In this document: in pieces, positions 13,756-47,703 of the stretch
Numbering within the stretch: position 1 is the first letter of the stretch
How the letters are laid out: each line of letters begins with the position of its first letter
Source: Selaginella moellendorffii
Taxonomy: Eukaryota; Plantae; Lycopodiophyta
Reading direction: 5' to 3'
NCBI RefSeq assembly: GCF_000143415.4
Contig: NW_003314329.1
Span: 143,421 to 207,420 of the forward strand
Length of the DNA: 64,000 bases
Program-made: the position numbers and the translations under genes
The notes under the pieces: generated by a model
What the model was told of the DNA's origin: nothing
What the model saw: only the letters and a program-made list of their open reading frames with translations
The model's database searches: none

Positions 13756-14173
13756 CTTTGGGTCAACTTTCGGCTGATCCCACTTGGTAGCCTGAGGTTC
13801 TTGGTGTTCAGCCACACCTTCTCCCCAGCTTGGAACTCTACTTCCCGACGCTTTAGGTTCGCGTACTTGGTTTGCCTTTGTTGAGCCCGTTCCAAGGAAT
13901 CCCTCACTAGATTCCAAATGTTGAGTCTTTCCGCCGTGAATGCCTCCACTGCAGGTAGCTCTCCATGATACTCGACCACGCCGAGTTCCACAAGACCTTC
14001 AATAGCTCGCCCATTGATGACTTCCCATGGACTCACCCCGATGCTCGAATGTGGTGAGTTGTTATAACACATTTCCGCAAGTCCCAAATGACTTACCCAA
14101 TCGGTCTGGTCTCCTGAGACATAGCATCGCAAATAATCCTCCAGCTGGCTATTCACCCTTTCCGTTTGTCCAT

Positions 14174-14219
14174 CTATCAAGAAGTGTTAGTGCCATCAAC
14201 TTGACTTAATACCCCATAC
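14174..14219 (-). other. 46-nt GT-AG intron in integrase
   Basis: AG|GTATGG...ACTAAC ACTTCTTGATAG|AT. Removal restores HPQIDGQTER in frame. Confidence 0.7.
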
Positions 14220-14609
14220 CTATCTGTGGGTGATAGGCTGTGCTGAATTTCAACTTGGTGCGATACTGTTCCAGGAGGGTTCTCCAGAACCTACTGGTGA
14301 AGATTTTATCTCGATCTGAGATAATCTCTTCTGGCCTTCCCCACACTTGAACCACTTGTTCGAAGAACAGCTTTGCCACACCTTCCGCATCCACTTCCGT
14401 TGTGGTGGGTATGAAATGTGCCATCTTCGAAAATCGGTCCACCACCACGAATATCGCATCAAACCCCTCGCTTGGGGGAAGTCCCGTGATAAAGTCCATC
14501 GTAAGACATTTCCACAGACGATCTGGAATTGGGATGCTTTGCAACAAGCCCCCACTAGCCTTAGTCACGGCTTTGACTTGCTGACATGTTGGACATGTCT
14601 TTACATAGT

Positions 14610-15204
14610 TGTAAGCTCCTGAGTTTGGACTTCCCGAGAGGTCACCCAGCCCAGTACTATTCAAACCCAAGGACGCTTAACTCCAACTATCCCAAGACCC
14701 TTAACCGATTGGAAAAGGGGGTGCACTCTTATTCATGGGCCCTTTCCCTCTATATTTGAACCCCTATGGACCGTCTCTCGAGTCGTTCCCTTTGGTTGCT
14801 TACAATCCACCACGCTTCCCTGCAAGTTCACGCCCTCGTGAACGGAAGCTGAGAGCCGCAGCTCTCCTGAGAGCCCCGCTCTCTTGACACCCTACCCCTT
14901 GGGTCGAGCCGAGCGGGAGCAAACTGGACCAGCCAGATGTCAATTAACATGTGGTGTGATTCCCTTAGCCAACCAACAGAGTCGGACCCGAGACCCCTCT
15001 GATACCAAATGTAAGCTCCTGAGTTTGGACTTCCCGGGAGGTCACCTAGCCCAGTACTATTCAAACCCAAGGACGCTTAACTCCAACTATCCCAAGACCC
15101 TTAACCGATTGGAAAAGGGGGTGCACTTTTATTCATGGGCCCTTTCCCTCTATATTTGAACCCCTATGGACCGTCTCTCTAGTCGTTCCCTTTGGTTGCT
15201 TACA
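14610..15204 (-). mobile_element. Full-length Cassandra TRIM with 5S-rRNA-containing LTRs
   Basis: Two 195-bp LTRs (14610-14804, 15010-15204; TGTAAGC...GCTTACA; 4 differences). 5S-like core AGTTAAGCGTCC...GGCTGGGTGACC..GGGAAGTCC. PBS TGGTATCAGAG at ~14997-15007. 205-bp non-coding interior. Confidence 0.93.
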
Positions 15205-16148
15205 AGAAGGTCCAAGCGATCCAGGAATGGGAGTGACCATCGAATGTACACGAGTTAAGGGCATTCTTGGGGCTATGCAACTACTATCGAAAGTTTATCA
15301 GACACTATTCGAGAGTAGCCCTGCCCTTAATGGACCAAACGGGAAAAGGGAAGATTGTATGGACAGCGGAATGCAAGGCGGCATTCGTCCACCTCAAAGG
15401 GAAGTTGAGGAAGGCCCCCGTGTTGGCATTACCAGATTTTGGTAAGGACTTTGAGGTAGACATGGATGCTTTGGACTTTGCGCTGGGCCCAATTTTGAAG
15501 CAAGACAACCATCCTGTAGCATTCTTCTCGAAGAAGTTGGACAAGGCTCAACGGAAGTGGCCTGCCCACGAGAAGGAATTGTTCGCGGTGGTCAAGGCGC
15601 TCAAGGAGTGGCGACACTACCTTGGGAGACACTTCAAGGTTTACACGGACAATGTGGCAACGAAACACTTCTTGTCACAGCCCGACCTGAGAGGGAAACA
15701 AGGTCGGTGGGCTAGTGCCTTGGCCGAGTTTGATTGCGAGATTCTGTACAAGCCTAGGAAGAGCAACATCGTGGCGGATGCGCTAAGTCGAAAAGCGAGC
15801 TTGAGGTTGGCGATATCTAGCGCAACAGCAACCTTCTGGGACGATGTGCGGACAGCATATGAGAATGATGGTCTAGCACAAGAAGTGTTGCTGAGGAATC
15901 TAGAGGCGCGGGAAGCTCACTAGAGAGGTGAGCTGCCAACGGAAGAGAAAACAGGTTATGCGGAACGCAATGGACTCATCTATTACAAGCAAACGAGGGT
16001 GTATGTTCCAGAAGGGGAACTAAGGAAGGTAGCCTTAGAAGAGTGTCATGACAGACCTCTTGTGGGACACGGTGGAGTGTCCAAGATGATGGGCTTACTC
16101 AAGAGAAAGTACCATTGGCCAGATATCGCTAAGGACGTCCAAGACTAT
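15205..16148 (+). pseudogene. Inverted segment of chromovirus pol (RT connection, RNase H, integrase N-terminus)
   Basis: EKVQAIQEW...FLGLCNYYRKFI, DMDAL, EKELFAVV, YTDN, NIVADALSR, ECHD...GHGG...DVQDY. Joins seamlessly to RT at 30144 and to integrase at 14609. Confidence 0.92.
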
Positions 16149-19100
16149 TGTAAGCGACTAAATTTTCCATTCTACTTTAGTCACTTAACCACACCTCCGA
16201 CCACTTGGAGGGGTCTCATTCACAACCTCTATCAGTCCAATTCAGGACTTGGGACTTGCTAGCCCCAAGAATGGCATCCATGCCACTCAACACTTGCACC
16301 TGGTCCAAGTGCTCCATGTGTCTGGTCCCAAGACCGACACCCAAAGGTACCACTGACATCTCGGCCCGTTACGCTAAGGCCATGCCCATTCACCTTTGCT
16401 GCACTAGTGGTCCAATACCACTTGCATCACCATCCCGTCTCTCCAAGACTGGGCCATCTGTCCACGAGTGGTCATCCTAGATCCACTCCTTAGCATCCTT
16501 GGGATTCCCACAGACCTGGGGAATCGCCTTCCCCAAAGTCCCTTTGTCAGTTCCTACCAAGTCCCTTTCTGCCCCTGGCCGTGTTTGCAAACACTGCCAC
16601 TGGATCGAGGCCCACAAGCCCGACCACTAAGTCCCACGGTCCTCTGGGACTTCCTCACCACACGACTGTATCCTTGGTCACTACCCCAGGGGACTGCTCC
16701 TCTTCCTTTCCACAGTCTGGGCCTTTGGGACAACATTTCGGAACACCGTGGCCTTACGCGAGCCACCTGGGTACTCTCCTCGCCTTCTGCCCTTGGGTGC
16801 TCTAGCCATGGGCTTAGAGCGGGTTTTGTTGAGCCACACCAGGTATCCAAGTAGGTAGTGCCACCCACACTTGGACTGGGAGCATCGGCCAGTCGATCTC
16901 CCGGGGGAACTAGAGCCGGCTCTTGAACACTTCACCAAGCTACCCCGCTTGTCGGTCCGTGTTCACTCTAGTCTTGGACTTCCCAATGGGCAGCTCATCA
17001 CCCAACACTGGGTCCGGCCTTCTTGGGCCGAATTGGCCTTTCCTGGCCAAACTGGCTCCACTGCAGTCCTCCCCCTACTATACTTTTGGAGCTCACCAAA
17101 CCCCCCAGGGTCTGGGAGACGAACGCTTTGGGCTTTCACCCTCTCAGGCTCCGGACTCGGACTCGGACTCGGACTCGGATTCGGACTCGGACTCGGGCTC
17201 GGGCTCGGTCTCGGCCTCGGCCTCGGCCTCGGTCTCGGTCTTAGTCCCGATCTCGGTCTCGGCCTCGGTCTCGGTCTCAGTCCCGATCTCGGTCTCGGTC
17301 TCGGTCTCGGTCCCGGTCTCGGACTCCATCTCGGACTCCATCTCGGACTCCATCTCGGGTCCATCTCGGGTCCATCTCGGACTCGATCTCGGACTCCATC
17401 TCGGGTCCATCTCGGACTCCATCTCGGACTCCATTTCGGGTCCATCTCGGGTCCACCTCGGACTCCATCTCAGACTCCATCTCGGACTCAATCTCGGGTC
17501 CATCTCGGACTCCACTTCGGACTCCAACTCGGGTCCATCTCGGACTCCACTTCCATCTCCAACTCGAGTCCATCTCGGACTCCACTTTGGACTCCAACTC
17601 GGGTCCATCTCGGACACTCCCACGTGTCATGTGTTGGTCCTTTTGGGTCCCTTTTTGGAGCCTCGCCTTTTGCTCGCTTCGTGCTCGTTCCTCGAGCACT
17701 TCGTTGGGAGTTCCACTCTCGCTCTTGACTTTTCAAGTCGGAGCTTTTGGTCCAAACGTGTTACGCTCATTTGGCTCTCGCTCCGGCCACTACCATGTGG
17801 CGCCCTTCCGGCTCCACTTTGGGGCCTAGGGATTTTGTGTCTCACAACTCCACCACCCATAGACGAAGTTCGATGTCCTCATCGAACGGTAAACCCTTTC
17901 ATAAAGTAACACCCACACGTGTTACCATTTCCATCCTTGGCACCTAGCCAATCTTTGTCTATGGTTTGACACCAAAGGCTCACCATGCCTTGTCCATCCT
18001 TTAAGGAGTGTAGTCTCTCCAACTTAGAGACTGATTAGACCACATGTAATGGTTCTCTCCTTTTATTGGTTTAGTTCTCGCTAAACCTCTTAGAGACCCT
18101 TCTCTAAGTCAATCCCACTACTCCTTCTCGAGTAGTCTCAATTTCCATCGATATAACCTTTGCACTTTGGAACTTTGAATTTTGACTTCTTGCAGTCAAT
18201 TTCCTAGGTGTCTCCGACACCTTGCCTTGCACCTTTTGTGCAACTCCACTTCCCATCCTAGGAAGTTCTCTACTCGAGGGCACCATCATCCTCTCTTCTA
18301 TTTCGTGCCAAAGTTCCAGTTATCATACTTTGTGCTAGGGCTGTTCATGGCCCTATCATTTGGCTACCTTACCGCTCCCTCCCTTGGAGCTTCCACTTTC
18401 GCCAAATCGGAGCATTTCGGAATCCCTCCTTGGAAACACACTTCCTTTCCCGCAACTTGTTAGCGTCCAACACATTAGTGTTCCTCGCCTAACTTTGTCA
18501 CTTGGATTCCTTCCAAGGGATTCCACGGCCCTATCTTGGCCACTCATCTTTTGCTCCTATCCGTTGATTGTTGCACCAAGCAACATCGAATCTCTACCTC
18601 CCTCCTTGAGGTATTGTTTCGGTTCCATAGCAAAGACTCTTCTTTGCCAAGTCCGGAGGATGTTCACCCCTAGTACGTCTCTTTAGCATCTTCTGCTATG
18701 GGCTCTATCCTCGGCCCAACTTTGTGATCCTCTCATGGGTCTCTTTAGAGACTACTTTCCTTGGACACACTATGCCATCACGATGACATAGCTCATTTCC
18801 CTAAGGTGCTTTTCCCACTTGGTCACCTTGACCAAGCCACACCATCATCAATAGTTCAAATCAACACTTTGAACTAGGAACCTTATTCCTTAACCCAAAC
18901 AAGGACCTTGTCCTTATTTAGCCATAAGATCACCTAGTGATCTCACCTCGGCACCTTAACAGGTTTGCCAATAGGTACTAGGTCTTCAAGACCTTTAACT
19001 TGTTAACTACGACCCCGGGGGCATCCCCCACACTTGGCGGTGTGCCCAAGCCAGCCCTTCCGGCCAAGGGTCCATAGCAACTGAGATTAGGTGTCCCCAT

Positions 19101-19193
19101 CTCACTCACCACGTCCTTGGTGCCACTTGCACCAAAGCGTTCAAGTTAGATATGCTGAGCTTTCACACTAAGCAATCTAACCGTGCATCATGA

Positions 19194-22100
19194 TGTAAGC
19201 GACTAAATTTTCCATTTTACTTTAGTCACTTAACCACACCTCCGACCACTTCGAGGAGTCTCATTCACAACCTCCATCAGTCCAATTCAGGACTTGGGAC
19301 TTGCTAGCCCCAAGAATGGCATCCATGCCACTCCACACTTGCACCTGGTCCAAGTGCTCCACGTGTCCGGTCCCGAGACCGACACCCAAAGGTACCACTG
19401 ACATCTCGGCCCGTTACGCTAAGGCCATGCCCATTCACCTTTGCTGCACAAATGGTCCAATACCACTTGCATCACCACCTCGTCTCTCCAAGACTTGGCC
19501 ATGTGTCCACGAGTGGTCATCCTAGATCCACTCCTTAGCATCCTTAGGATGCCCACAGACCTGGGGAATTGCCTTCCCCAAAGTCCCTTTGTCAGTTCCT
19601 ACCAAGTCCCTTTCTGCCCCTGGCCGTGTTTGCCAACACTGCCACTGGATCGAGGCCCACAGGCCCGACCACTAAGTCCCACGGTCCTCTGGGACTTCCT
19701 CACCACATGACTGTGTCCTTGGTCACTACCCCAGAGGACTGCTCCTCTTCCTTTCCACAGTCTGGGCCTTTGGGACAACATTTCGGAACACCGTGGCCTT
19801 ACGCGAGCCACCTGGGTACTCTCCCCACCTATCGCCTTTAGGTGCTCTAGCCATGGGCTTAGAGCGAGGTTCCGTTGAGCCATGCCTGGTATCCAAGTAG
19901 GTAGTGCCACCCACACTTGGATTGGGAGCATCGGCCAGTCGATCTCCCGGGGGAACTAGAGCCGGCTCTTGAACACTTCACCAAGCTACCCCGCTTGTCG
20001 GTCCGTATTCACTCTAGTCTTGGACTTCCCAGTGGTCAATTCATCACCCAACACTGGGTCTGGCCTTCCTGGGCCAAACTGGCCTTTCCTGGCCAAACTA
20101 GCTCCACTGCAGTCCTCCCCCTACTATACTTTTGGGGCTCACCAAACCCCCCAGGGTCTGGGAGACGAACGCTTTGGGCTTTCACCCTCTCAGGCTCCGG
20201 ACTCGGACTCGGACTCGGACTCGGACTCGGACTCGGATTCGGACTCGGACTCGGGCTCGGGCTCGGTCTCGGTCTCGGTCCCGATCTCGGTCTCGGTCTC
20301 GGTCTCGGTCCCGGTCTCGGTCCCGGTCTCGGTCTCGGTCCCGGTCTCGGTCTCGACTTCGGACTCCATCTCGGACTCCATCTCGGACTCCATCTCGGAC
20401 TCCATCTCGGACTCCATCTCGGACTCCATCTCGGACTCCATCTCGGACTCCATCTCGGGTCCATCTCGGGTCCATCTCGGACTCCATCTCGGACTCCATC
20501 TCGGGTCCATCTCGGACTCCATCTCGGACTCCATCTCGGACTCCATCTCGGGTCCATCTCGGGTCCATCTCGGACTCCATCTCGGACTCCATCTCGGGTC
20601 CATCTCGGACTCCATCTCGGACTCCATTTCGGGTCCATCTCGGGTCCACCTCGGACTCCATCTCGGACTCCATCTCGGGTCCATCTCGGACTCCACTTCG
20701 GACTCCAACTCGGGTCCATCTCGGGTCCACCTCGGACTCCATCTCGGACTCCATCTCGGACTCCATCTCGGACTCCACTTCGGACTCCAACTCGGGTCCA
20801 TCTCGGGTCCACCTCGGACTCCACTTCGGACTCCAACTCGGGTCCATCTCGGACTCCACTTCGGACTCCAACTCGAGTCCATTTCGGACACTCCCACGTG
20901 TCATGTGTTGGTCCTTTTGGGTCCCTTTTTGGAGCCTCGCCTTTTGCTCACTTCGTGCTCGTTCCTCGAGCACTTCGTTGGGAGTTCCACTCCCGCTCTT
21001 GACTTTTCAAGTCGGAGCTTTTGGTCCAAACGTGTTACGCTTGTTTGGCTCTCGCTTCGGCCACTACCATGTGGCGCCCTTCCGGCTCCACTTTGGGGCC
21101 TAGGGATTTTGTGTCTCACAACTCCACCACCCATAGACGAAGTTCGATGTCCTCATCAAACGGTAAACCCTTTCATAAAGTAACACCCACATGTGTTACC
21201 ATTTCCATCTTTGGCACCTAGCCAATCTTTGTCTATGGTTTGACATCAAAGGCTCACCATGCCTTGTCCATCCTTTAAGGAGCGTAGTCTCTCCAACTTA
21301 GAGACTGATTGGACCACATGTAATGGTTCATCCTTTTATTGGTTTAGTTCTTGCTAAACCTCTTAGAGACCCTTCTCTAAGTCAATCCCACTACTCCTTC
21401 TCGAGTAGTCTCAATTTCCATCTATTGAATGTTTGCACCTTGGAACTTTTACTCTTTTGACTTTTTGGGAGTAAATTTCCTAGGTGTCTCCAACACCTTG
21501 CATTGCACAGATTGTGCAACTCCACTTCCCTATCCTAGGAAGTTCATTACTTGAGGGCACCACCATCCTCTCTTCTATTTCGTGCCACCTTGGGCACTAA
21601 GTTCCATTTATCATACTTTGTGCTAGGGCTGTCCATGGCCCTATCATTTGGCTACCTTACCGCTCCCTCACTTGGAGCCTTTACTTTGCCAAATTGGAGC
21701 ACTTAGGAATCCGTCCTTGAAAGTCCGCTTCCTTTCCCACAAGCTGTTAGCATCGAACACATTAGTGTTCCTTGGCTAACTTTGCCATTTGGATCCCTTC
21801 CATTAAATTCCATGGCCCAAACTTTGGCCACTAGTCCTTTGATCCTATCCTTGATTGTTGCACCCAGCAACATCGGATCGCTACCTCCATTTTTGAGGTA
21901 TCCTTTCGGTTCCATAGCAAAGACTCTTCTTTGCCAAGTCCGGAGGATGTTCACCCCTAGTATGTCTCTTTAGCATATTCTGCTATGGGCCCTATCCATG
22001 GCCCAACTTCGTGACCCTCCCATGGGTCTTTTATAGAGACTACTTTCCTCGGACTCACTATGCCATCGGATGGACATAGTTTATTTCCCTTAGGTGCTCT

Positions 22101-25100
22101 TCCCACTTGGTCATTGCGACCAAGCCACACCATCTTAAACAGTTCAATTTCAACATTTTGAACCAGGAACTTCATTCCTTAGCCAACCAAGGACCTTGTC
22201 CTTATCTGGCCATAAGATCACCTAGTGATCTCACCTTGGCACCTTAACAGAGTTGCCAAGAGGTACTTGGTCTTCTAGACCTCCAAGTTGTTGACTATAA
22301 CCCCGGGGGCATCCCCCACACTTGGCGGTGCACCCAAGCTAGCCCTTGCGGCCAAGAGTTCATAGCAACTGAGATTAGGTGTCCCCATCTCACTCACCAC
22401 GACCTTGGTGCCACTTGCACCAAAGCGTTCAAGTTAGATATGCCGAGCTTTCACACTAAGCAATCTAACCGTGCATCACGACTCCGAGGCATCCCTCGCT
22501 TGGCGGTGTGCCCAAACCAGTCTCCCCACTGAGAGTCCATGACCACCGAAATATGAGTGTCCTCATATTCCAAACCATCACCACGCCCTAGTGATTTGGG
22601 ACTCGAACCCAAGCACTAGAGGGTCGGGACTCGAACCCAACCTCCGTATATGCATCTACGGACGGCATCACACTAGATGCCTGGCGTGACTCCCCACGCC
22701 GGTGCACCAACCTATTTTTAAAGCGCGCTACTGATCACAGCTTAGGAACCTAGTTCCTCCACACTGCCAAGTCCTCTCACTTGACATGTCTGTGATCATG
22801 CATGGACTCCTCCATGCTCGGCCCCATGGCCCACCCTTTTTGAAGTTATCACCTTCAACTAGGGTCTTTGTTCCCCCGACGTGCCAATCTCACTTGGCAA
22901 GTTCTCCGACCATTGTAACATGGTTCCTGCATAAGCGTGAAAGTCCTTGACCATCGACTTTCGTTCAAAGCCCCCTCTTTGAACACTTGGGAACTACTTC
23001 CCTAACCTTGATAACCTTGCCTCATGGCAAGCTTCAAGACCACGCTTTTGCTGCGCCACTCTGATTTTGCGCGTTCCATGAACCATTTACACTTGGCCTT
23101 TCTAGGTACTACGCTACCTAGAATCGTCTTTGGGAACCTTGAAGGAACTCTATCCCTCAGCTTGCTAAGGCCTCCCTTTTTGCAAGCCTTCCAAATGCCA
23201 TATAGTCTAACATGGACAATTCCATATTTTAGACTCTCCATGGCATCACGGTTGCTAGCGGCAACACCCTTGAGCCCCCACTTCATTTTCCACTCCCAGC
23301 TGGCATAACCAACCTTGGTTATGCCCTTTGATTTCTATGGTTCAGTTCCATCCCAACACTACTTGCCTTTGGCTTCACACCTTTCCTTCGGTCATTCTCC
23401 TCCAGACCAGGAGGATAGCTTTGCACTTTCTATCATGCCTTAGCAAGTATTCTTAGGGATGAACCTACCCAATAGCCTAGGGAGTGGTTCCTCAATCCGG
23501 GTATGCTCAGCTTATAATCCCACACACTAGGGTTACATTGTTGCTTATGGGCCTTTACATGCCCATCACTAGCCTTGCCAAAATTCCATTTTTGGCTTTG
23601 TCCAACTTGGGTAGACAGTCCTCTCCTGTCTCCGCAACCTTGAACATTTGGATAGCACCTTCTATCCATCATTCGCTAGGGACTTAGTCCCTTGGGCTTT
23701 ATCCATTGCCCTCGCGACATCAAACACCACCTCTTGGTGTTCTAGAGTGTTCGAGTGTCCCAATGACGGCTTCCTTGACAATGAGTATTTCCTTTCATGA
23801 CATTGACTTACTATATCGCAACATAAGCAATTTATCCCCCGTAAGGGTATATCTAACTTCTTTATACCATTAAGAAGTCTTGGGTAGTTACCTTCTACCC
23901 GCTTAACCAATTATCTTGCACCTCTTGCTTAGTTGCCCCAGAGCTGTCAAGTCTTACAACTCATTGCTTGGTGCTTCCACACCTCCATCATTATCTGGGT
24001 CACCACACTCCAACCGCATGCCTTCCAGCTTAGGCCTTGCCATTCCCATTTCCATTGGGACTCCTTTGGCAAGGGGTCCTCATGAACCCAACAACATAGC
24101 CTCAAGGTATCACACCTTGGCACATTTGGTGTCTCCAGACCATCGGCTCCACGAGCCTACCTCTATGACACTTTTTCTTTGTGTCTAAGTCTTTGCCAAG
24201 ACCAATACCGCTCTTTCTCATGCCAACCATTTGTTAGCACGGCACCATAGAGGTCACACACAACTTTGTGTCAAAGTTGTTTTCTATTTGGGAACACCTT
24301 TCCCACGACTTTTAGCACGGCACATTTTGCCATCGATGAGATACCCTCTGTTCTCATCCTTGGATCCTATGATCCCCCCCCATCCTTCGTGGGGTAAAAC
24401 ACACCTCAGTCCAAATGCTTCCATCAGTCCTTTTAGGACCATCCCTTGACTCTACTTGAGTCGTCTAGCAACTTTGGACTTGGTTAATCCACCAACCCGT
24501 AAGGTCCTACTTGTGAGGCACTAGCTCACTGGAATACACTTCTTGCATTCCTGTCCTACTCAAAAGGACTATTTTCACAAGTGTTACTCCGACACTTGAT
24601 TTTGTTCTCTGGGGGCAACCTTTGCCCCTTAGGACTACTTGTCCATGTGATGAGAACACCAACTCATCCACTTAATACACCCCCAACGCCTGGGGTTGTT
24701 CCAGCATTTATAAGAGGTAGCCCCGGCTACCTTTTCAAGGACTTGAGTCCTCTTCCGTATTTGACCTCCCACGGTCATTACTTCTGGTCTCACATTCATG
24801 AGCACCAACCTCAACTATATGAGGAAAATCTTGTGACTCCTTTATTGTTTTGGAGTCTCTATCTTTCCCGTGATCCCAACTATAGTTGTTTACCACAACT
24901 ACATTAGCCAGTTTGCTAAGTCAAACGCTCATCTGGATCACATCCTCAACTCTTTGAGAAAAGCCATCTACTGTTCCCAAGATCCCAAAGTCGTTCCATT
25001 ATTGGCCCTTTTCTATCCACCACCTCGTCTACAAGTTTGCACATGAACTGTAATGGAGAGCCATGTCTTCCCGACTTGCTACTCCTCAAGGATAGGCCCA

Positions 25101-27074
25101 CTCCTCGGACCTTCCGATGCCAACACTAGTGGTGATATACTTGAGCACCAATAAAAGTCGGACTAAGGAACAGCTCCGATACCAGATTGTAAGCGACTAA
25201 TTTTTCCATTCTACTTTAGTCACTTAACCACACCTCCGACCACTTGGAGGAGTCTCATTCACAACCTCCATAAGTCCCATTCAGGACTTGGGGCTTGCTA
25301 GCCCCGAGAATGGCATCCATGCCACTCAACCTTTGCACTTGGTCCAAGTGCTCCACGTGTCCGATCCCATGACCGACACCCAAAGGTACCACTGACATCT
25401 CGGCCCATTACGCTAAGGCCATGCCCATTCACCTTTGCTGCACAAATGGTCCAATACCACTTGCATCACCATCCCATCTCTCCAAGACTGGGCCATCTGT
25501 CTACGAGGGGTCATCCTAGATCCACTCCTTAGCATCCTTAGGATGCCCACAGACCTGGGGAATTGCCTTCCCCAAAGTCCCTTTGTCAGTTCCTACCAAG
25601 TCCCTTTCTGCCCCTGGCCGTGTTTGCCAACACTGCCACTGGATCGAGGCCCACAGGCCCGACCACTAAGTCCCACGGTCCTCTGGGACTTCCTCACCAC
25701 ACGACTGTGTCCTTGGTCACTACCCCAGAGGACTGCTCCTCTTCCTTTCCACAGTCTGGGCCTTTGGGACGACATTTCGGAACACCGTGGCCTTACGCGA
25801 GCCACCTGGGTACTCTCCCCACCTATCGCCTTTAGGTGCTCTAGCCATGGGCTTAGAGCGAGGTTCCGTTGAGCCATGCCTGGTATCCAAGTAGGTAGTG
25901 CCACCCACACTTGGATTGGGAGCATCGGCCAGTCGATCTCCCGGGGGAACTAGAGCCGGCTCTTGAACACTTCACCAAGCTACCCCGCTTGTCGGTCCGT
26001 ATTCACTCTAGTCTTGGACTTCCCAGTGGTCAATTCATCACCCAACACTGGGTCTGGCCTTCCTGGGCCAAACTGGCCTTTCCTGGCCAAACTAGCTCCA
26101 CTGCAGTCCTCCCCCTACTATACTTTTGGGGCTCACCAAACCCCCCAGGGTCTGGGAGACAAACGCTTTGGGCTTTCACCCTCTCAGGCTCCGGACTCGG
26201 ACTCGGACTCGGACTCGGACTCGGACTCGGATTCGGACTCGGACTCGGGCTCGGGCTCGGTCTCGGTCTCGGTCCCGATCTCGGTCTCGGTCTCGGTCTC
26301 GGTCCCGGTCTCGGTCCCGGTCTCGGTCTCGACTTCGGACTCCATCTCGGACTCCATCTCGGACTCCATCTCGGACTCCATCTCGGACTCCATCTCGGAC
26401 TCCATCTCGGACTCCATCTCGGGTCCATCTCGGGTCCATCTCGGACTCCATCTCGGGTCCATCTCGGACTCCATCTCGGACTCCATCTCGGACTCCATCT
26501 CGGACTCCATCTCGGGTCCATCTCGGACTCCATCTCGGACTCCATCTCGGACTCCATCTCGGGTCCATCTCGGACTCCATCTCGGACTCCATTTCGGGTC
26601 CACCTCGGACTCCATCTCGGACTCCATCTCGGGTCCATCTCGGACTCCACTTCGGACTCCAACTCGGGTCCATCTCGGGTCCACCTCGGACTCCATCTCG
26701 GACTCCATCTCGGACTCCATCTCGGACTCAACTTCGGACTCCAACTCGGGTCCATCTCGGGTCCACCTCGGACTCCACTTCGGACTCCAACTCGGGTCCA
26801 TCTCGGACTCCACTTCGGACTCCAACTCGAGTCCATTTCGGACACTCCCACGTGTCATGTGTTGGTCCTTTTGGGTCCCTTTTTGGAGCCTCGCCTTTTG
26901 CTCGCTTCGTGCTCGTTCCTCGAGCACTTCGTTGGGAGTTCCACTCCTGCTCTTGACTTTTCAAGTCGGAGCTTTTGGTCCAAACGTGTTACGCTCGTTT
27001 GGCTCTCGCTTCGGCCACTACCATGTGGCGCCCTTCCGGCTCCACTTTGGGGCCTAGGGATTTTGTGTCTCACA
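19194..27074 (-). mobile_element. LARD copy 2, nested in copy 1 with non-matching flanks
   Basis: LTRs 19194-21120 and 25188-27074 with PBS and PPT. Flanks CATGA and CCGTA; ~1.36 kb of host sequence missing. Confidence 0.9.
20197..20890. repeat. LTR-internal minisatellite (6-bp GGACTC/GGTCTC followed by 11-12-bp TCGGACTCCATC/TCGGGTCCATC units), present in every LARD LTR
   Basis: Also at ~17150-17616, 26190-26843, 29423-29912, 45858-46486, 52887-53460, 58607-59175 and 63748-64000. Related arrays in the chromovirus LTRs (12578-12856, 33544-33818). Confidence 0.95.
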
Positions 27075-30000
27075 CCGTAAGGGTATATCCAACTTCCTTA
27101 TGCTATTAAGAAGTCTTGGGTAGCTACCTTCTACCCGTTTAACCAATTATTTTGCACCTCTTGCTTAGTTGCCTCATAGTTGTCAAGTCCTACAACTCAT
27201 TGCTTGGTGCTTTCACACCTCCATCATTATCTGGGTCACCACACTCCAACTGCATGCTCTGCAGCTTAGGCTATGCCATTCCCCTTTCCATTGGGATTCC
27301 TTTGGCAAGGGGTTCTCATGAACCCACCAACATAGCCTCAAGGTATCACACCTTGGCACATTTGGTGTCTCCACACCATCGGCTCCACGAGCCTACTTCT
27401 ATGACATTTCCCCTTCGTGTTTAGGTCTTTGCCAAGACCAACACCACTCTTTCTCATGCCAACCATCCGTTAGCACTGCACTATAGAGGTCACACACAAC
27501 TTTATGTCAAAGTTGTTTTCTTCTGGGAACACCTTTCCCATAACTTTAGCATGGCACATTTTGCCATCGATGAGATACCCTCTGTTCTCATCCTTGGATC
27601 CTATGATCCCCCCCCATCCTTTGTGGGGTACAACACACCTCAGTCCAAATGCTTCCATCAGTCCTTTTAGGACCATCCGTTGACTCTACTTGAGTCATCC
27701 AGCAGTTTTGGACTTGGTTAATCCACAGACCCGTAAGGTCCTACTTGTGAGGCACTAGCTCACTGGAATACACTTCTTGCATTCCTTTCCTACTCAAAAG
27801 GACTATTTTCACAAGTGTTACTCCGACACTTGATTTTGTTCTCTGGGGGCAACCTTTGCCCCTTAGGACTACTTGTCCATGTGATGAGAACACCAACTCA
27901 TCCACTTAATACACCCCCAACTCCTTGGGTTGTTCCAGCATTTATTAGAGGTAGCCCTGGCTACCTTTTCAAGGACTTGAGTCCTCTTCCGTATTTGACC
28001 TCCCACGGTCATTACTTCTGGTCTCACATTCATGAGCACCAACCTTAACTAAATGAGGAAAATCTTGTGACTCTTTTATTGCTTTGGAGTCTTTATCTTT
28101 CCCGTGATCCCAACTGTAGTTGTTTACCACAACTACATTGGCCAGTTTGCTAAGTCAAACGCTCATCTGGATCACATCCTCAACTCTTTGAGGAAAACCA
28201 TATATTGTTCCCAAGATCCCAAAGTCGTTCCATTATTGGCCCTTTTCTATCCACCACCTCGTCTACAAGTTCACACATGAACTGTAATGGAGAGCCATGT
28301 CTTCCCGACTTGCTACTCCTCAAGGATAGGCCCACTCCTCGGACCTTCCGATGCCAACACTAGTGGTGATATACTTGAGCACCAATAAAAGTCGGACTAA
28401 GGAACTGCTCCGATACCAAATTGTAAGCGACTAAATTTTCCATTCTACTTTAGTCACTTAACCACACCTCCGACCACTTGGAGGGGTCTCATTCACAACC
28501 TCCATCAGTCCAATTCAGGACTTGGGACTTGCTAGCCCCAAGAATGGCATCCATGCCACTCCACACTTGCACCTGGTCCAAGTGCTCCATGTGTCTGGTC
28601 CCAAGACCGACACCCAAAGATACCACTGACATCTCGGCCCGTTACGCTAAGGCCATGCCCATTCACCTTTGCTGCACTAGTGGTCCAATACCACTTGCAT
28701 CACCATCCCGTCTCTCCAAGACTGGGCCATCTGTCCACGAGTGGTCATCCTAGATCCACTCCTTAGCATCCTTGGGATGCCCACAGACCTGGGGAATCGC
28801 CTTCCCCAAAGTCCCTTTGTCAGTTCCTACCAAGTCCCTTTCTGCCCCTGGCCGTGTTTGCAAACACTGCCACTGGATCGAGGCCCACAGGCCCGACCAC
28901 TAAGTCCCACGGTCCTCTGGGACTTCCTCACCACACGACTGTATCCTTGGTCACTACCCCAGGGGACTGCTCCTCTTCCTTTCCACAGTCTGGGCCTTTG
29001 GGACAACATTTCGGAACACCGTGGCCTTACGCGAGCCACCTGGGTACTCTCCTCGCCTTCTGCCCTTGGGTGCTCTAGCCATGGGCTTAGAGCGGGTTTT
29101 GTTGAGCCACACCAGGTATCCAAGTAGGTAGTGCCACCCACACTTGGACTGGGAGCATCGGCCAGTCGATCTCCCGGGGGAACTAGAGCCGGCTCTTGAA
29201 CACTTCACCAAGCTACCCCGCTTGTCAGTCCGTGTTCACTCTAGTCTTGGACTTCCCAATGGGCAGCTCATCACCCAACACTGGGTCCGGCCTTCCTGGG
29301 CCAAACTGGCCTTTCCTGGCCAAACTGGCTCCACTGCAGTCCTCCAGCTACTATACTTTTGGAGCTCACTAAACCCCCCAGGGTCTGGGAGACGAACGCT
29401 TTGGGCTTTCACCCTCTCAGGCTCCGGACTCGGACTCGGACTCGGACTCGGACTCGGACTCGGATTCGGACTCGAACTCGGGCTCGGGCTCGGTCTCGGC
29501 CTCGGCCTCGGCCTCGGTCTCGGTCTCAGTCTCGATCTCGGTCTCGGTCTCGGTCTCAGTCCCGGTCTCGGTCTCGACTTCGGACTCCATCTCGGACTCC
29601 ATCTCGGACTCCATCTCGGGTCCATCTCGGGTCCATCTCGGACTCCATCTCGGACTCCATCTCGGGTCCATCTCGGGTCCATCTCGGACTCCATCTCGGA
29701 CTCCATCTCGGACTCCATCTCGGACTCCATGTCGGGTCCACCTCGGACTCCATCTCGGACTCCATCTCAGACTCCACTTCGGACTCCTTCTCGGGTCCAT
29801 CTCGGACTCCACTTCGGACTCCAACTCGGGTCCATCTCGGACTCCACTTCGGACTCCAACTCGAGTCCATCTCGAACTCCACTTCGGACTCCAACTCGGG
29901 TCCATCTCGGACACTCCCACGTGTCATGTGTTGGTCCTTTTGGGTCCCTTTTTGGAGCCTCACCTTTTGCTCGCTTCGTGCTCATTCCTCGAGCACTTCG

Positions 30001-30143
30001 TTGGGAGTTCCACTCTCGCTCTTGACTTTTCAAGTCGGAGCTTTTGGTCCAAACGTGTTACGCTCATTTGGCTCTCGCTCCGGCCACTACCATGTGGCGC
30101 CCTTCTGGCTCCACTTTGGGGCCTAGGGATTTTGTGTCTCACA

Positions 30144-32693
30144 CTTCTCTGGGTCCACCTTGAGCCCGTCCTGGCCCACCACATGCCCGAGAAACTTTAC
30201 CTCTTGTTGAGCAAAGTCACATTTGCTCTCTTTAGCATACAGTTTGTGTTCCCTTAGTTTCTCAAACACCTTCGCCAAGTGTTCGGCATGCTCCTCTAGC
30301 GTCTCGCTATAGATCAGGATGTCGTCGATATAGACGACCACAAAGTGATCCAGATAGGGTACAAAGATGTGGTTCATCAACGCCGAAAACGTTGCCAGCG
30401 CATTGCACAGCCCAAAGGGCATCACCAGAAACTCAAAACTCCCATACCTCGTTTGACAGGTTGTCTTCTCGACATCTTCCTCAGCTACCCTGATCTGGTA
30501 GTATCCTGACATTAGGTCAATCCTTGAGAAGTATTTTGCCTTTCCCAACCTATCGAACAGGTCCTCAATCCTTGGCAAAGGGTACTTGTTCTTCTTGGTA
30601 TACTTGTTGAGCAACCGGTAGTCTATGCACATGCGCATAGATCCATCTTTCTTTTTCACAAATAGCACCGGCGCCCCATACGGCGACTTGCTCAACCTAA
30701 CATACCCTTTGTCCACCAACTCCTTTAGTTGGCACTTGAGCTCCTTGAGTTCTTTTTTGTTCAAATGATAGGGGGGATGAACCACCGCCTCAGCACCCTC
30801 AACCAACTCAATCTTATGTTCTATCGGTCGTGCGGGGGGCAACCCCGCCGGTAGCTCCTCCGGCATGGTATCCTGGAATTAGTCCAACACCCGCTGGATC
30901 ACCAAAGGTACTTCTTCCGTTCCTTTCTTTTTGTCACTCTTCACCGAGAGTAAGCACAAAAAGGGTGCCTTAGTTCCTTTGGTGAGTTGTCCTCTCGTGG
31001 ACACCAGGTTTAAGCAGGATTCTTTGGCCTTGCTTTGCCCTACCTTTAAATCCTGGGCCTCCACCCTAGATCTTCTTCCTTGGGCATTCGCCAGTACCAC
31101 AAGGTTTCTACCTTGTCCATGCAGGGCTACCACGAACCGATTAAACCAATCCATTCCGAAGATCAGGTCAAATCCCACTATGTCTAACACGGTGAAATCC
31201 ATGTCTACTTTCCATGTCCCTACTTCGACTCTCGCTTGTCGAAGTACCTCATCGGTGCTTTGGCTACCTTGAACAAACTCTATAGTCCTTGGTTCGCCTA
31301 GCCACTGCACCATTAGTCCGGCTTGCCGGACTATGTCTGCAGCCACAAAATTATCCGAAGCACCCGTGTTAATAAGGATCTTAACAAAGCTACCTCCGAG
31401 ATTCCCTCGGAGGGCTAGTAGATGTCGCGAACAACTCTCTACCAAAGTTGCTCATGTAATGAGTAACTTTGAGTTAGGGACTGGATCACATACCTCAGTT
31501 TGGACTTCACCCGACTTGATGGCCATATTGGCTCTGGCCTTCTTCGGGTAGGGACATTCCCTCGAAAAGTGTCCCGCTTCACCGCAGTTGTAGCATACGT
31601 TGTTTCCCACGCTGCTATACGACCTGACCTTCTTATCCGTGGGCTTGTCTTTTTTCACTTGACTCCCCTACGTACTCACTCGCTGGCCACCAGATTTGCC
31701 TTTTCGAAACCCCGAGGACTCATTCTTAGAGAAACTCTTCTTGAATTTCCCCCTGCTATACGTTCCCCTTGTTGTGGCCCCTTTGCTAAATGTGGATCCC
31801 GACCCCGTCATGTTCCCCTTTTGCAGGTTATCATTGAAATGCACCTTGATGGCCGCATCCAACGCTTCCTTGTAGTTGGTCGGGTTCCAGCGCATCACCT
31901 CACCGCGAGCCCAGGTTTGCAAACCTGATATAAAGGCATGGAATGCATCCATATCCCCCATGTCCGTGACAAGTATCCTCTTTGCCATGAACCCGTTCAC
32001 ATATTCCTGGATGGTTCCAGTCTGCTTCAGCCTACTCAGCTCATCACTCAGATGCAGAGTGGCATTCGGAGGAACGTATGTTGTGCAGATCCTCGCCTTC
32101 ATCATGTCCCAGGTGGCCACCGGTACTTCGTTGGCCTCTGTTGTTCTCCACCAAGACTTGGCATTATCTGCCAAGTATGGTTTTGCACATGGGACCTTCT
32201 CCGAGCTCGGTAACCGCAACGCTTGGAAGTAGTCCTCCATATCGTAAAACCAATCCTCCACAACCTTATAGTCGTTCACTCCCTTGAACACCGGTGGGGG
32301 CTTTGGTTTGTACTTGGGAACTGCCTGAGGGACTGATTCTACTTCGGTCTGTTCGACCTTGTCTGGTTTTGCCTCAGTCCCTGCCGAAGGGTCTGCACCT
32401 TCTGCACTGCCAGCATCCGCAGTCTTTCGCTTTTTCTTCCGCTTCTCGTCACGCTTTAACTTGCGTACGAGAGTCTCCAGCAGGGCATTGGTCTGTGCCA
32501 ACTGTCCTTCTAGCACGTCCAATCGAGCCTTGGACGACCGAACCTTGCCACCGGACTCCTATTTGGAAATTTCCTCACTGGAGTCCTCCTCATGCAAGGA
32601 TTCCTCATCCATAGCCTCTTGTTCGACCGGAGGCTCCAGCTCTGGCGGAGGTTCTGTCTCCACTTGGGTTCGCTTACGCCCTGCCCTTGCCAT
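30144..32693 (-). pseudogene. Chromovirus gag-protease-RT; single reading frame with nonsense codons
   Basis: Gag with CYNCGEAGHFSREC, protease ILINTGAS, RT RMCIDYR...VMPFGLCNA...YIDDILI. The ORF pieces are all in one frame, separated by TAG/TGA/TAA. Confidence 0.93.
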
Positions 32694-33898
32694 CTCCCAG
32701 CAATCCGCCTCTATCCTTCGCTAAAACTGGGGAAAAGGCTCCGATACCAAATTGTAAGCCACAAATTTTTCCCTTCCAATTTGCTAGCTTACCTCGTCTG
32801 TCCGTCCGACACTGCCTTGGCTTTTGCTAAGTTCCCTCGCCAAGGTTCTCGCCTATGGTACCAACTCCTACTTGGTCCTACTTGCTTTCAGCTACTCACT
32901 GCACGAGCAACGGAGCGTTAGCCATCCATCCACGGATTCCCAATCTCTCCCAATCCCCCTCCCTGGGTTAGACTGGATTTAAGGTTCAGCTACACTCCCC
33001 GCAAGCACAAGTAGCCAAGCACACCAAGCTTCCAGGTTCCTAACATCCCTTGGTACCACAAGACTTGATCATGGGACCCTCTAAATCCCAAGTCTTGGGT
33101 GCAACACTTGCTTCGGGACGCCGGGGCGAAACACCGTGGCCTAGCGGCCCGGTATGGGTACCTCTACCCCCCCACTTCCATCCCGAAGGAAGGCCCAAGC
33201 CCCTAGGAAGGGCAAGGACCAATGAGCCGCATGGTACTCATGTGGGGCACCACTCCACATGAGCCGGGAGCACCGCAATCGGTTTCCCTTTCGGGAGTGG
33301 GAGCTGCTCTTGAGCATTTCCATGGATGGCCCCTCTGGCACCAACCAAGTCCATGCTCACTCCCACCCAAGGCCCCTCGGTCCCAGTCCCAACCTCAAGT
33401 CAATTTGGGAGCCCCACTGAAAAGTCCCTTCTAAACTGGTTCCTGGACCTCACTATCCCTACTATACTTTTGGAACCCCCTGCAGCCCCCCCCCCCCTGG
33501 GAGACGCACGCTTTGGGCTTTCACCCCTTGACCCGTATTAGTATTTGGACTTAGTCTCTGGCTTGATTTCGGATCCGACTTCGGATTCGGTCGCGGACTC
33601 GATCTCGGACTCGAACTCGGACCCGATCTCGGACCCGACCTCGGACTCGACCTTGGACTCGGTCTCGGACCCGATTTCGGATCTCGGACTCTGTCTCAAA
33701 CTCGGTCTCGAACTCGGACTCAAACTCGGTCCCTAAGTCGGTCTCGGACTCGATTCCGGACTCTATCTCGAACTCGGTCCTAGAGTCGGTCGTGGATTCG
33801 ATCTTCGACTTGGTCCCATCCGATGAACTCCTTGTCATTTTGGTCATGCTTTTGGGGTTCCTTTAGCCTACAACACCTCGGCAAGTTGGTTCCTTACA

Positions 33899-36167: not shown

Positions 36168-39100
36168 TTAATGAATCTCACCTTGAACCCGGGTTATGAA
36201 TGCTCTTGCTGCATCTCTTGCATGGTCTGGCAAGGTGATGGTGGCACTCTGCTTCCGCATCCAACCATGCACAACATTATCCACCGATATGCTTATGCTG
36301 GGATCCCTTGGATTCAGCACCCATCTCTTTTCTAGGCAATCCTTCGTATATCCGGAACTTGGCTTGAACCACTCCATAGTTACATTGAAGGAGTTAGTTT
36401 CCGCGTCCTCCTCTGCATCAGTGATGCAGCGCCCCACCCATATCATTTGTTTTTTATTACTGGGTCTGACAAGCATGACCATTCCTTTGCAGACCTGTAT
36501 TGGATTGAATGCTGATCTGGCTTCTTGTTCCTCGGCCCACAATAGTGATCCTCAACATCGTTATCTGTCACTGCATTTCCAGAGGACATTGTTCCGCTAC
36601 TATCTGGTGCTCTGGGTTCTGGCCAAAAGGACTCTTCCAATTCTTCATATACAACCGGCCCATTTTGGATAGCAGATATAATCTTCTCCTAGTATTCGAG
36701 CAAAGGCTTGCACCTCTTAAAATAGGATTCTCCACCAAACACCAACCCCCTCTTCCAGAAGGCAATATGCTGTCTAATCCCGGCCACTATACTTTCCTGG
36801 TCTTTGAGTCCATCCGGGTGCATCGGCCGTGGGGAACCCTGAGGAATCATAGGTTCCCCAGTTATGGGATCTCTCTTGAAGAATTCAATGCCATCCACTG
36901 GCAGCCACACTGTGTCCCATTCTCTCATCTTGTACCTCATCACTGGAGCACCGTCACGCATGCTGAAATGAAACTGAAGAGGCTTGGAGTGGCCAATCAG
37001 CATTTCGGATCCGTCCCTGATGTAGCCTCTTACAAACCCCTTAAAGTCTGGAACCTCTGTCACAAGTGCAGCTTCAACAGTGCCTTTGATGCAATTTTGG
37101 AATTCATCGTAGAGTTGTGGGAGGGTGAGGACATTGGATCGCCGGAGGGACTCTGCCAGGTGACTGAACATGGCATCAACGTCTTCATGAGTGTGCCCAA
37201 CCATGAGAAAGCCAAGTGTAACCGTTTCAAATATGCCTTTGGCAACAAGCATCGCCAAGTACGCGAAGACGTACATGTTTTTGTTCTCACTGCCAGCATT
37301 GTCTGTTTGGAGCAGAAGATGGGGTGGAAGGCCACATCGGCCGCAAGAACTTCCTTGAGATTCTACTTCGTTTGGATGAGGCTGTGCATTCACCGGGCGA
37401 CCAGCCTCGTCGGAATGGCATGAGGCCTCACGTGATAACCCTACAATCTGACGGCCAACATATTCACTGGGATGGCATGGGGCCCCACGCGATACTGCAA
37501 GCCTTTGCTCCTCCTCCAGCTGAACCCTGTATGGGGTTCGATCGACAAGGGCCTTATGCAAGGGTTGGCCGTTCAGCTCAGTCTGCGCACTTTGCAGAGA
37601 CCTTAAGTGTTTTGCTAGGGACGCAATCATCATGTTTGCACCCCCGCCACCCCATAGAGGTACAAAGAAGTTCCCATAGTTCTGGGCACCATGCCCATGA
37701 GCGATTATGCCAAACAGAGACACAGGCAGCTGCATGGATGAAGAGATTGCCTTGGGGGCAGGATTGAGTCGAGGTAAGCACGTCTTTTTCTGGTCCATTT
37801 TGTCGTGGATGCAGAGGTAAGAGTCAGGTCTCTCCATAGAGAGAATCCTGTTATGATAATATGCAGTCCTGCAGCTTCTCTACTCGATGTTGTGGTCGAG
37901 CCGCCTTCTAACCAACGTCTCTCGCTCTTGAGCGCTGCAAGAATTCTTCGACAAAGCCATTTTGATAGCAGTGCACTCGTCACACTTTGAAAAGCTGGAG
38001 TACTTTCCTATACTCACATCCCTGAACCTGTTGCTCCACAATCTACTAAATCTAGATTGGCTCAGCTTCCTGTAGCCATTACTCTGGAGTTCCCGATTCA
38101 CATCTTCCAATATGGCCCCCTTGGTATACATGGAAGGGAGAACTCGTTGGGTGTCTCGTGTTCCATCTTCCAAGAGGCGGGTTTTATGTGGTTGCTGCTC
38201 GCTACATGTCTCGACAAACCTCTTGAAGATTGCCTCTCCATATACAACATGACCCCTAGTTTTGTGCGTACCGTCGTTCCCATGGACTGCCTGTTGAACC
38301 CTTTGTTCCTCGAACTCAGTTTTGATTCTGTAGAATGTGCTTCGAGGGACTCCATAAATGATTCTCCATGCCTTCATGCAGACCAAACCCCTCTGGAAGA
38401 CCATGCCCCCCACCTGATGTTCTGAAGCATCAATAGATGACCGTAATGCCTCATACACAAAATTGCAAGCTGCCTTCCAGGACAATGTCTTGTATCTTGC
38501 TCTCTCCTCTTCAATAGCATCCCAATCAGCATGTTGACAGCACCTCCTCTTGCAACAAGCAACTGTCGAGACCATTCGAACCTCCATCGCCATTTTCTGC
38601 CTTTTCGGTTCGTTGCTCAGATCCCTTTGGCTGCGCTGTAGGAAGGTGTACTTTCTTTTCCCATGAAGAGATGTTCTGTCATCAGTTGTAGTGGTGTTTG
38701 ATTGTGAATCCTTCACATTCTCAAACACTAAATGCCTCAATTTCCACCGCACAATGCTTCCAATAGTCAGACTGTTTTCTTCTGTGTCAACAACCTCTAA
38801 AATCGCAACTCCAATATCATCCCAGCCCAATTCTTGATTAGCAACCGCATCTCTTGGATCGACAACTGTGGCTAAGCCCTCAGCTACCACCTCCCCCTCG
38901 GGGTTGTTTAGAAACACCTTTGCCTGAATCCATGTAGCACGGTTCTTAAGATCCACGGAGGGAACATGCGTCGCACTTGCGCTGTCCCCAACATCTGCTT
39001 TCTTCTGCAGATTTTTCAAGGCAACAACAACATTTACCCCGACGACCATCTCTCCTCGTTCAATAGTAACCACATTCCCATCGAAGACAGTCTCTACTGA

Positions 39101-39232
39101 TACAGCAGCATTGCCTTCCCCAAGCCTTTGACAGTGTATAACAAAGTTCCGATCCATAGACACAAGGGTCCCTTTTGCAACTCTCTTCCCACCATTCAAA
39201 ATGTAAACCTTTTCCCCAACCCTGAAGGCCAT
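36168..39232 (-). pseudogene. DDD transposase, Sola-like; two in-frame stops (37880, 36689) and a frameshift near 36520
   Basis: FSKCDEC...H, IHDKMDQKK, LQTDNAGSENKN, FLMVGHTHEDVDAMFS. Superfamily assignment rests on motif recall plus the 4-bp TSD. Confidence 0.8.
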
Positions 39233-39305
39233 TCTGAAAGTGCAAAAAAGAAGTTAAGACCATACAAAAAATGATTGGAGAATGGCCTAAATCATAACAT
39301 ACCAA

Positions 39306-39495
39306 ATAGCATGAGGCCACATGCCATTATTCAAACATGCTATTGACACCCACGTGAAATTTCGCATTCACAAAATTGGCATGAGGCCTCATGCCATCTT
39401 GATATACACACAGCTGCAGGCAAGTAAAAACATACATGACAATACGCTAGCCATGAAATTGCAAGGGCCCAAGATGGCATGTGGCCTCATGCCAT
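39306..39495. promoter_or_regulatory. Cluster of three 22-bp palindromes ATGGCRTG-N6-CAYGCCAT upstream of the transposase ATG
   Basis: Copies at 39306, 39376 and 39474. Representative of >20 copies confined to this transposon. Confidence 0.8.
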
Positions 39496-40518
39496 TTCTA
39501 AATGTGGTCCTAAACCATTCCATGGTGAACATACCAGGAAGCACAAGTGCCGAATATCAAGAGGAAGCGGTAGCCACACCAAAGACAGTGCCGCTCGCAA
39601 CACCGCAACTACTCGTAGCGCCGCTCGCAACACCGCAACTGCTCGTAGCGCCGCTCACACAAACTGCCACTCGCATAAACTGCCGCTTGCAATGGCGCTC
39701 GCAATGCCGCAACCGCTTGTAAACGCATAAACCACAGCTCACAATGCCGCTTACACAAGCAGCGCTCACTGCGCTCAGCGGAACCAAGAACACGGCACAC
39801 AAAAATGATAGACCTAGGAATGAGTTCGAGAATTCAAAAATAACACACGCTTGAACGTCACATCAAATCCTCTGACAAACCAGATCTTATGATTCCTTTG
39901 ACAAATTTCAAACTGAGTAGCTTCTAGACTTTGCTGTCGGAGGTTGAACTTTGTCACATCATGTCCTTGCCTCGATCCAGCTGTGCCATGTCAGTGATTC
40001 GAACTTTGCCATGCCATGTCAGCGATCCGTGCCAAGATTATTCGCCGTGTAAAGGAATAATTATGCTGTGTGTGTACGTCCATTTATGGCAATATAAGGC
40101 CACACGCCATTCAAATAATAATGCTAGTCGAGCATTTTTTGGTGCATTTTTGGGTTCAAAATTGCATGAGCCCACATGCTATAAAGTTTACCTGTACCAA
40201 AAATAGAAACAGCTTTATTTACTTGGGAATTTAAATGGTTGAGGCATTTTTAAACTTACAAACACATGCCCTACTTACATTCATTTGGTTGCTTAAAATT
40301 CAAAAATATTATAAACCTTTCTTTTTGCATTTTCAATGTTTTCAATTATGGTTTTTGATTTTCGCAGGACCAGCCTAGTAATCTATTTGCATCCCGTCAT
40401 GTTTATAGCTAGCTTTCGTTTGTCCCCTTCGCTAGCCTGAGATACATCTGCTCAGCATCTGCCTCTTACAGCATTTGCCCAGAAAGGGCATCTTTCTTCA
40501 CGCAGCATTTGCCACATG

Positions 40519-40543
40519 TTTAGGGTTAGGGTTTAGGGTTTAG
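40519..40543 (+). repeat. Interstitial telomeric/telo-box repeat (TTTAGGG)n in the divergent-promoter region
   Basis: tttagggttagggtttagggtttag. Confidence 0.8.
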
Positions 40544-45200: not shown

Positions 45201-45434
45201 CAATTTGGCGAAGTAAAGGCTCCAAGTGAGGGAGCGGTAAGGTAGCCAAATGATAGGGCCATGGACAGCCCTAGCACAAAGTATGATAAATGGAACTTAG
45301 TGCCCAAGGTGGCACGAAATAGAAGAGAGGATGATGGTGCCCTCAAGTAATGAACTTCCTAGGATAGGGAAGTGGAGTTGCACAATCTGTGCAATGCAAG
45401 GTGTTGGAGACACCTAGAAAATTGACTTCCAAAA
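42211..45434 (+). mobile_element. LARD internal-region fragment without LTRs, opposite orientation to the other copies
   Basis: Reverse complement of ~21466-24685. No LTR ends and no TSD. Confidence 0.88.
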
Positions 45435-45627
45435 CTTCACCGCCAACTCCGCCGCCCACTCCGCCACCCATACGCAGCCCACTTGGCGTCCCGGGAGATT
45501 TCAGCGCCACTCTCCAACGCAGTGTCGATGGAAAGGTCAATGCACACCAAACTGTAGAATCTTGGAGCAAAATAACGGTCGGATCTATGGCAAATGCCCC
45601 TGAAACATTGCAACTCCAATATCATCC

Positions 45628-47488: not shown

Positions 47489-47703
47489 CATCCCAGCCCA
47501 ATTCTTGATTAGCAACCGCATCTCTTGGATCGACAACTGTGGCTAAGCCCTCAGCTACCACCTCCCCCTCGGGGTTGTTTAGAAACACCTTTGCCTGAAT
47601 CCATGTAGCACGGTTCTTAAGATCCACGGAGGGAACATGCGTCGCACTTGCGCTGTCCCCAACATCTGCTTTCTTCTGCAGATTTTTCAAGGTTTAGGGT
47701 TTA

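Follow-up and report, generated by a model that had tools for sequence, protein, structure and literature searches.

Retroviral-type cDNA is understood to integrate strictly in cis, with both ends of one molecule joined to one site. Here we describe a locus in the lycophyte Selaginella moellendorffii (contig NW_003314329.1, positions 143,421 to 207,420; this stretch of 64,000 nucleotides, analysed at full length, is the window below) at which two different long terminal repeat (LTR) retrotransposons, a Cassandra terminal-repeat retrotransposon in miniature (TRIM) and an element resembling the large retrotransposon derivatives (LARDs), have swapped target-site duplications (TSDs) across a 944-bp inversion in the pol gene of a host Ty3/gypsy chromovirus. 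Ectopic recombination between inverted copies of one LTR family likewise inverts a segment and leaves each element with one TSD copy per site, whereas the two elements at our locus come from different families, are co-oriented, have 8 bp in common, are non-chimeric and meet the breakpoints at their last LTR bases. In alternative (reversed-ends) transposition of maize Ac/Ds, and in inversions mediated by composite insertion sequences, one enzyme synapses the ends of two copies, and the resulting inversion or deletion is bounded by element tips and target duplications, as at our locus; those ends are cut from the chromosome, whereas the donors we propose would be two free, newly inserted cDNAs handled by a retroviral-type integrase. 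Concerted integration by retroviral and Ty1 integrases in vitro also joins like ends of different molecules a few bases apart on opposite strands, Ty1 integrase achieving full-site integration when the donor oligonucleotides are U3-only or U5-only (PMC8487063), whereas our proposal concerns two coupled events in a living genome and a heritable inversion. Aberrant retroviral integration, in which one end is joined by host repair, produces flanking deletions, large duplications and, rarely, inversions (PMC5041404), but in such proviruses one end is usually abnormal, and often truncated, with no regular short duplication beside it, unlike the four perfect ends and two perfect 5-bp duplications present here. 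Finally, 11-31% of intact Cassandra copies in Rosaceae, for example pear, are without matching TSDs, which has been ascribed to inter-element recombination (PMC4079214). Our Cassandra and outer LARD, each intact with non-matching flanks, resemble this class, and an inner LARD at the same locus fits it fully; what sets Cassandra and the outer LARD apart is that their missing TSD partners lie on the neighbouring unrelated element, as the reverse complement, with nothing deleted.

The inversion and its borders comprise the following features, in window coordinates.

14605-14609, plus strand: ATAGT, one copy of target site 1, abutting the U5 tip of Cassandra
14610-15204, minus strand: Cassandra TRIM, 595 bp, with LTRs at 14610-14804 and 15010-15204 and an internal region at 14805-15009
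15205-16148, plus strand: inverted host pol segment, 944 bp, with RNase H at 15267-15920 and the integrase zinc finger at 15999-16148 (Pfam)
16149-30143, minus strand: LARD-like non-coding LTR element (outer), with LTRs at 16149-17846 and 28422-30143 and tips TGTAAGCG...TCTCACA
30144-30148, plus strand: CTTCT, second copy of target site 2, abutting the U3 tip of LARD

The flanks are ordered ATAGT, Cassandra, AGAAG ... ACTAT, LARD, CTTCT, in which ATAGT and ACTAT are reverse complements, as are AGAAG and CTTCT, and the inverted segment itself starts with AGAAG (a copy of site 2) and ends with ACTAT (a copy of site 1). At the left junction of Cassandra (14610) ...ACATAGT gives way to TGTAAGCTCC, and at its right junction (15204/15205) ...GGTTGCTTACA is followed by AGAAGGTCC; the left junction of LARD (16149) reads ...CAAGACTAT then TGTAAGCGAC, and its right junction (30143/30144) ...GTGTCTCACA then CTTCTCTGG. 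All four LTR tips at the inversion are intact and both breakpoints fall on the last base of an LTR. When the segment is turned back each element acquires a perfect 5-bp TSD, ATAGT for Cassandra and CTTCT for LARD, and 5 bp is also the length of the TSDs of three normal insertions of these families in the window (GCTTG, CAGCG and CATCC). Four intact tips and two regular TSDs, each split between the elements, are the pattern that a double integration paired in trans would leave. As the sense strand of the host, of Cassandra and of LARD is minus in all three, site 1 (ATAGT/ACTAT) holds both U5 tips and site 2 (AGAAG/CTTCT) both U3 tips.

The host sequence on either side provides an internal ruler for the inversion.

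11789-33898, minus (sense) strand: host Ty3/gypsy chromovirus, with LTRs at 11789-12935 and 32753-33898 and the TSD GCTTG on both sides
12936-14604, minus strand: 3' part of host pol, with the integrase core at 14209-14604 and the chromodomain at 13259-13663 (Pfam)
30149-32752, minus strand: host gag, protease (PR) and reverse transcriptase (RT) part, with gag at 31671-32522, protease at 30882-31445 and RT at 30126-30866 (Pfam)

The Pfam families of the host (Retrotrans_gag, RVP_2, RVT_1, RT_RNaseH, Integrase_H2C2, rve and Chromo) give the order gag-PR-RT-RNaseH-integrase with a C-terminal chromodomain that defines a chromovirus, canonical once 15205-16148 is turned back. Joining the reverse complement of 30149-32752, the segment 15205-16148 as it stands and the reverse complement of 12936-14604 yields a single frame across both joints, which read ...KVDPEK/VQAIQEW... 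and ...DVQDY/VKTCPTCQQVK... (the slash marks the joint), and the second restored joint can be aligned gaplessly with an independent integrase (9874-10515). The restored frame and the gapless second joint together establish that the inversion is exact to the base, with nothing lost or gained. An earlier sequence-only reading of this DNA had proposed that the pol segment is inverted, that the two TSDs are swapped between Cassandra and LARD, and that no base is missing at breakpoints placed on the LTR termini; the opposite-strand Pfam domains and the restored frame bear out the first point, direct reading of the junctions the second, and the frame restoration with the gapless integrase alignment the third. 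Coincidence is ruled out by the chance probability of two swapped 5-bp matches (~1e-6) and by the exact restoration of the frame at both junctions. The structure, an exact inversion with split TSDs, is real. The integrase sequence used for comparison (9874-10515, plus strand) is a fragment of a different retroelement and is 35% identical to the host integrase. An exact protein look-up of the 247-aa RT open reading frame that runs into LARD returned no match.

The three elements share the sequences on which reverse transcription and integration depend. The host LTRs are 1147 bp long and 5.06% diverged; its primer-binding site (PBS), TGGTATCGGAG, adjoins the right-hand LTR on the minus strand, a purine tract on the same strand adjoins the left-hand LTR, and in sense orientation its tips read TGTAAGGAACC...GGCTTACA. 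Cassandra is a miniature (<1 kb) non-coding LTR element with 195-bp LTRs and a 205-bp internal region (14805-15009). The latter contains the PBS TGGTATCAGAG on the minus strand, given as TTTGGTATCAGAGG where it adjoins the LTR, which we take to be complementary to the initiator tRNA-Met (tRNA-iMet); the tips in sense orientation are TGTAAGCAACC...GAGCTTACA. Both Cassandra LTRs carry a 5S-rRNA-like stretch on the minus strand (14613-14700 and 15013-15100; Rfam 5S_rRNA, 33.2 and 28.9 bits, E=2e-4 and 3e-3), with scores under the gathering score of 38 and a 32-nt internal gap. Separately, a 70-bp stretch (2184-2253) of the internal transcribed spacer between 5.8S and 18S (ITS1) of the neighbouring ribosomal DNA (rDNA) matches the 5S-like beginning of the LTR of Cassandra with 85.7% identity. 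The third element has LTRs of 1.7-1.9 kb and a non-coding internal region of 3.9-4.1 kb, in which the longest open reading frame of a full copy is 137 aa; we call it LARD-like because its LTRs are shorter than those of the barley type elements. In sense orientation its tips are TGTGAGACAC...TCGCTTACA, those of the outer copy being identical to the tips of a LARD copy at 51895-59406 that has the normal TSD CAGCG, and the element retains a stretch similar to the 3' internal region of the host along with the same 12-bp LTR tandem repeats. Host, Cassandra and LARD have in common the PBS TGGTATC(A/G)GAG, the polypurine tract (PPT) core GTGGTGGA and the tips TGT(A/G)AG...GCTTACA. With these motifs in common, Cassandra and LARD could plausibly have relied on one and the same integrase, and we infer from these sequences that a single chromovirus machinery plausibly serves the host as well.

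The LTR pairs of the two elements are compatible with a single date. Their divergence, judged by eye at about 1-2% in the sequence-only reading, comes to 2.05% for Cassandra (4/195 differences) and 1.27% for the outer LARD (15/1180), the latter counted in the non-tandem parts of the LTRs only; the two values are compatible (Fisher p=0.33), in a weak test that has four Cassandra differences to work with. Both elements are far younger than the host at 5.06% (p=1e-7).

The model that we prefer, at about even confidence, is one compound integration in which the Cassandra and LARD cDNAs were inserted together with their ends synapsed in trans. Both cDNAs would have been present in one pre-integration complex and processed by the same chromovirus-type integrase. 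The two U5 tips would be brought together in one intasome, which would perform a normal 5-bp staggered insertion at ATAGT, while the two U3 tips would form a second intasome and undergo the same reaction on the same DNA at CTTCT, a distance of 939 bp from the first site. Joining in trans would necessarily flip the intervening DNA and split each 5-bp duplication between the two elements; such a reaction could alternatively end in a deletion, one of the elements being carried off on a circle. A variant with the same product would have the cDNAs first joined U3-to-U3 and inserted by their two U5 ends, after which the junction would be processed and inserted nearby. The 3'-OH polarity at all four joints, as worked out from the junction sequences, is consistent with this sequence of events, and the position of the breakpoints on the last LTR base would be accounted for by the integrase reaction alone. 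The co-presence of the two cDNAs, their synapsis in trans and the simultaneity of the two insertions are what we infer from this arrangement.

Several considerations weigh against this model. The sequence-only reading had already suggested cross-paired integration, and while the idea fits every base, the polarity and the shared termini, the identical final sequence would result from two normal insertions and a subsequent exact flip through the terminal match, the alternative named in that reading, and one locus cannot discriminate between the two. The shared termini that pairing in trans needs are also the very feature that supplies microhomology for such a flip. The age test is nearly powerless, and a divergence of 1-2% is in any case what most LARD copies of the window show. 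Two complete cDNAs must be present in one complex, and the lineage must survive a transient chromosome break. A limited literature search turned up no in vivo report of two retroelement cDNAs paired in trans, nor, within its partial coverage, any account of two different elements that share their TSDs reciprocally.

The strongest alternative, which we consider unlikely but take seriously, is that Cassandra and LARD were inserted independently and normally, at ATAGT and CTTCT respectively, and that the spacer between them was then inverted in place, by two template switches or by a reciprocal exchange in the 8 bp (GCTTACAA/TTGTAAGC) over which the U3 tip of Cassandra and the U5 tip of LARD match in inverted orientation. 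The facing tips do share GCTTACA, the 7-bp match of the sequence-only reading, which becomes 8 exact bases with the adjacent A (12/14 overall) and is positioned exactly at both breakpoints, and a template switch at an inverted repeat would produce a loss-free inversion such as is seen; 944 nt copied on the wrong template is, however, long for a template switch. Exchange is also in keeping with a locus that is recombinationally active, in that the inner LARD resembles a crossover product, and with the fact that intact elements without matching TSDs are common and conventionally ascribed to recombination (PMC4079214). Against this, 8 bases are far under the length used by homologous recombination, and the terminal match is not privileged, there being 26 further inverted 8-mer matches within 1 kb on either side. 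Moreover, of the 8-bp inverted pairs spaced by 200-2000 bp in LARD copies whose age is similar or greater (26.8 kb in total), 0/665 have been flipped.

An assembly artefact, in which a short piece between two normal insertions was flipped by the assembler among high-copy repeats, seems very improbable to us. A flip at repeat boundaries would by itself create swapped TSDs, and the window is a repeat nest beside rDNA with odd 100%-identical patches elsewhere; but the borders of the piece coincide with the terminal base of each element, with the correct tips on both sides, which would need an 8-bp overlap that no assembler uses, the window contains 0 Ns, and both novel junctions would have to be present in reads. 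We find it harder still to credit the usual explanation for swapped TSDs, homologous recombination, whether between inverted copies of the same family with its traces later erased or as a mosaic of two host copies assembled by Cassandra x Cassandra and LARD x LARD exchanges. The elements are unrelated and co-oriented, and no chimeric LTR or second-copy remnant is found at either breakpoint; inverted homology of tens of base pairs or more is absent there, as nothing past the 12/14 bases is shared by the right end of Cassandra and the left end of LARD, nor does self-BLAST of the window reveal any. With only 8 exact base pairs (12/14) in common, ordinary homologous recombination is left without a substrate, and the mosaic version would require Cassandra and LARD to have inserted at an identical pair of sites in two separate host copies. 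One-ended integration completed by host repair, of the type in PMC5041404, is ruled out because there is no truncated end and both TSDs are regular. The probability remaining after the compound integration and these alternatives we leave to something else.

If the two cDNAs were indeed integrated in trans, the intasome is able in vivo, as it is in vitro, to pair ends that belong to separate molecules, and such events rearrange host DNA without homology, adding a route by which repeat-rich genomes acquire small inversions and deletions. They would also alter the counts of intact TSD-less elements used for DNA-removal rates, and would furnish indirect evidence that two non-autonomous RNAs can be reverse-transcribed in one particle. 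More generally, and tentatively, as we put it somewhat below an even chance, LTR-retrotransposon integrase in this lycophyte may recurrently synapse the ends of two cDNAs in vivo, often those of Cassandra co-packaged with a larger non-autonomous element, so that coupled insertions invert or delete the DNA between nearby sites. Such recurrence would be an undescribed enzyme-driven source of small structural variants and would account for part of the intact TSD-less class now ascribed wholly to recombination. Pairing in trans is directly testable through a genome-wide search for reciprocal reverse-complement TSDs of neighbouring elements.

The LARD at this locus, treated as one element in the sequence-only reading, is a complex of two nested LARDs with four LTR copies, starting at 16149 (L1), 19194 (L2), 25188 (L3) and 28422 (L4); what stands of the earlier description is the outer LARD (16149-30143) with its swapped flanks. 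L1 and L4 have many private variants in common and differ at only the 15 of 1180 non-tandem positions counted above, which identifies them, on sequence comparison, as the sister LTRs of the outer element.

19194-27074, minus strand: inner LARD, of one family with the outer element that encloses it, bounded by L2 and L3, with flanks CATGA (19189-19193) and CCGTA (27075-27079)

These flanks provide no TSD around the inner copy, and 1357 bp of the outer internal region are missing where it sits. The differences between L2 and L3 are mosaic, with 21 (of 24 in one count) in LTR columns 14-321 and only 6/910 elsewhere. Such clustering, the lack of a TSD and the 1357-bp loss point to an ordinary unequal crossover, and the inner LARD is best explained by one in which two co-oriented LARD insertions, separated by 1.36 kb, exchanged through their left LTRs. 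An initial indication that the inner pair is older than the outer (2.3% vs 1.27%) was dropped, as L2 and L3 are 0.66% diverged outside the patch, which fits nesting. The four-LTR structure is a matter separate from the inversion. Tandem arrays with 12-bp (also 11- and 23-bp) periods occur in every LARD LTR (17116-17650, 20156-20890, 26144-26845 and 29410-29912), and a weaker one lies in the host chromovirus LTR (12480-12860); sister LTRs differ in the number of array copies, so that a naive count overstates LTR divergence (3.0% vs 1.27%).

Further along the window, the region 38801-42210 compares with 45433-45627 and 47489-48484 as a scrambled patchwork of duplicated pieces, in an order reversed relative to the source (86 bp at 97.7%, 92 bp at 100%, ~221 bp at 100% and 795 bp at 99%). 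The pieces flank a truncated LARD internal fragment (42211-45432, minus strand) and a solo LARD LTR (45628-47488, TSD CATCC), and may have arisen by templated repair, by segmental duplication or through an assembly problem. The window as a whole begins with rDNA, which is followed by a 54-kb nest of LTR retrotransposons.

1-5827, minus strand: 35S rDNA, with the large-subunit (LSU) gene at 1-1712, 5.8S at 1885-2038 and the small-subunit (SSU) gene at 2360-4169

A 1686-bp block made up of the first 28 nt of 18S and the spacer upstream of it occurs again at 59965-61650 with 98.8% identity, which places the 54-kb transposon nest between two rDNA-unit starts.

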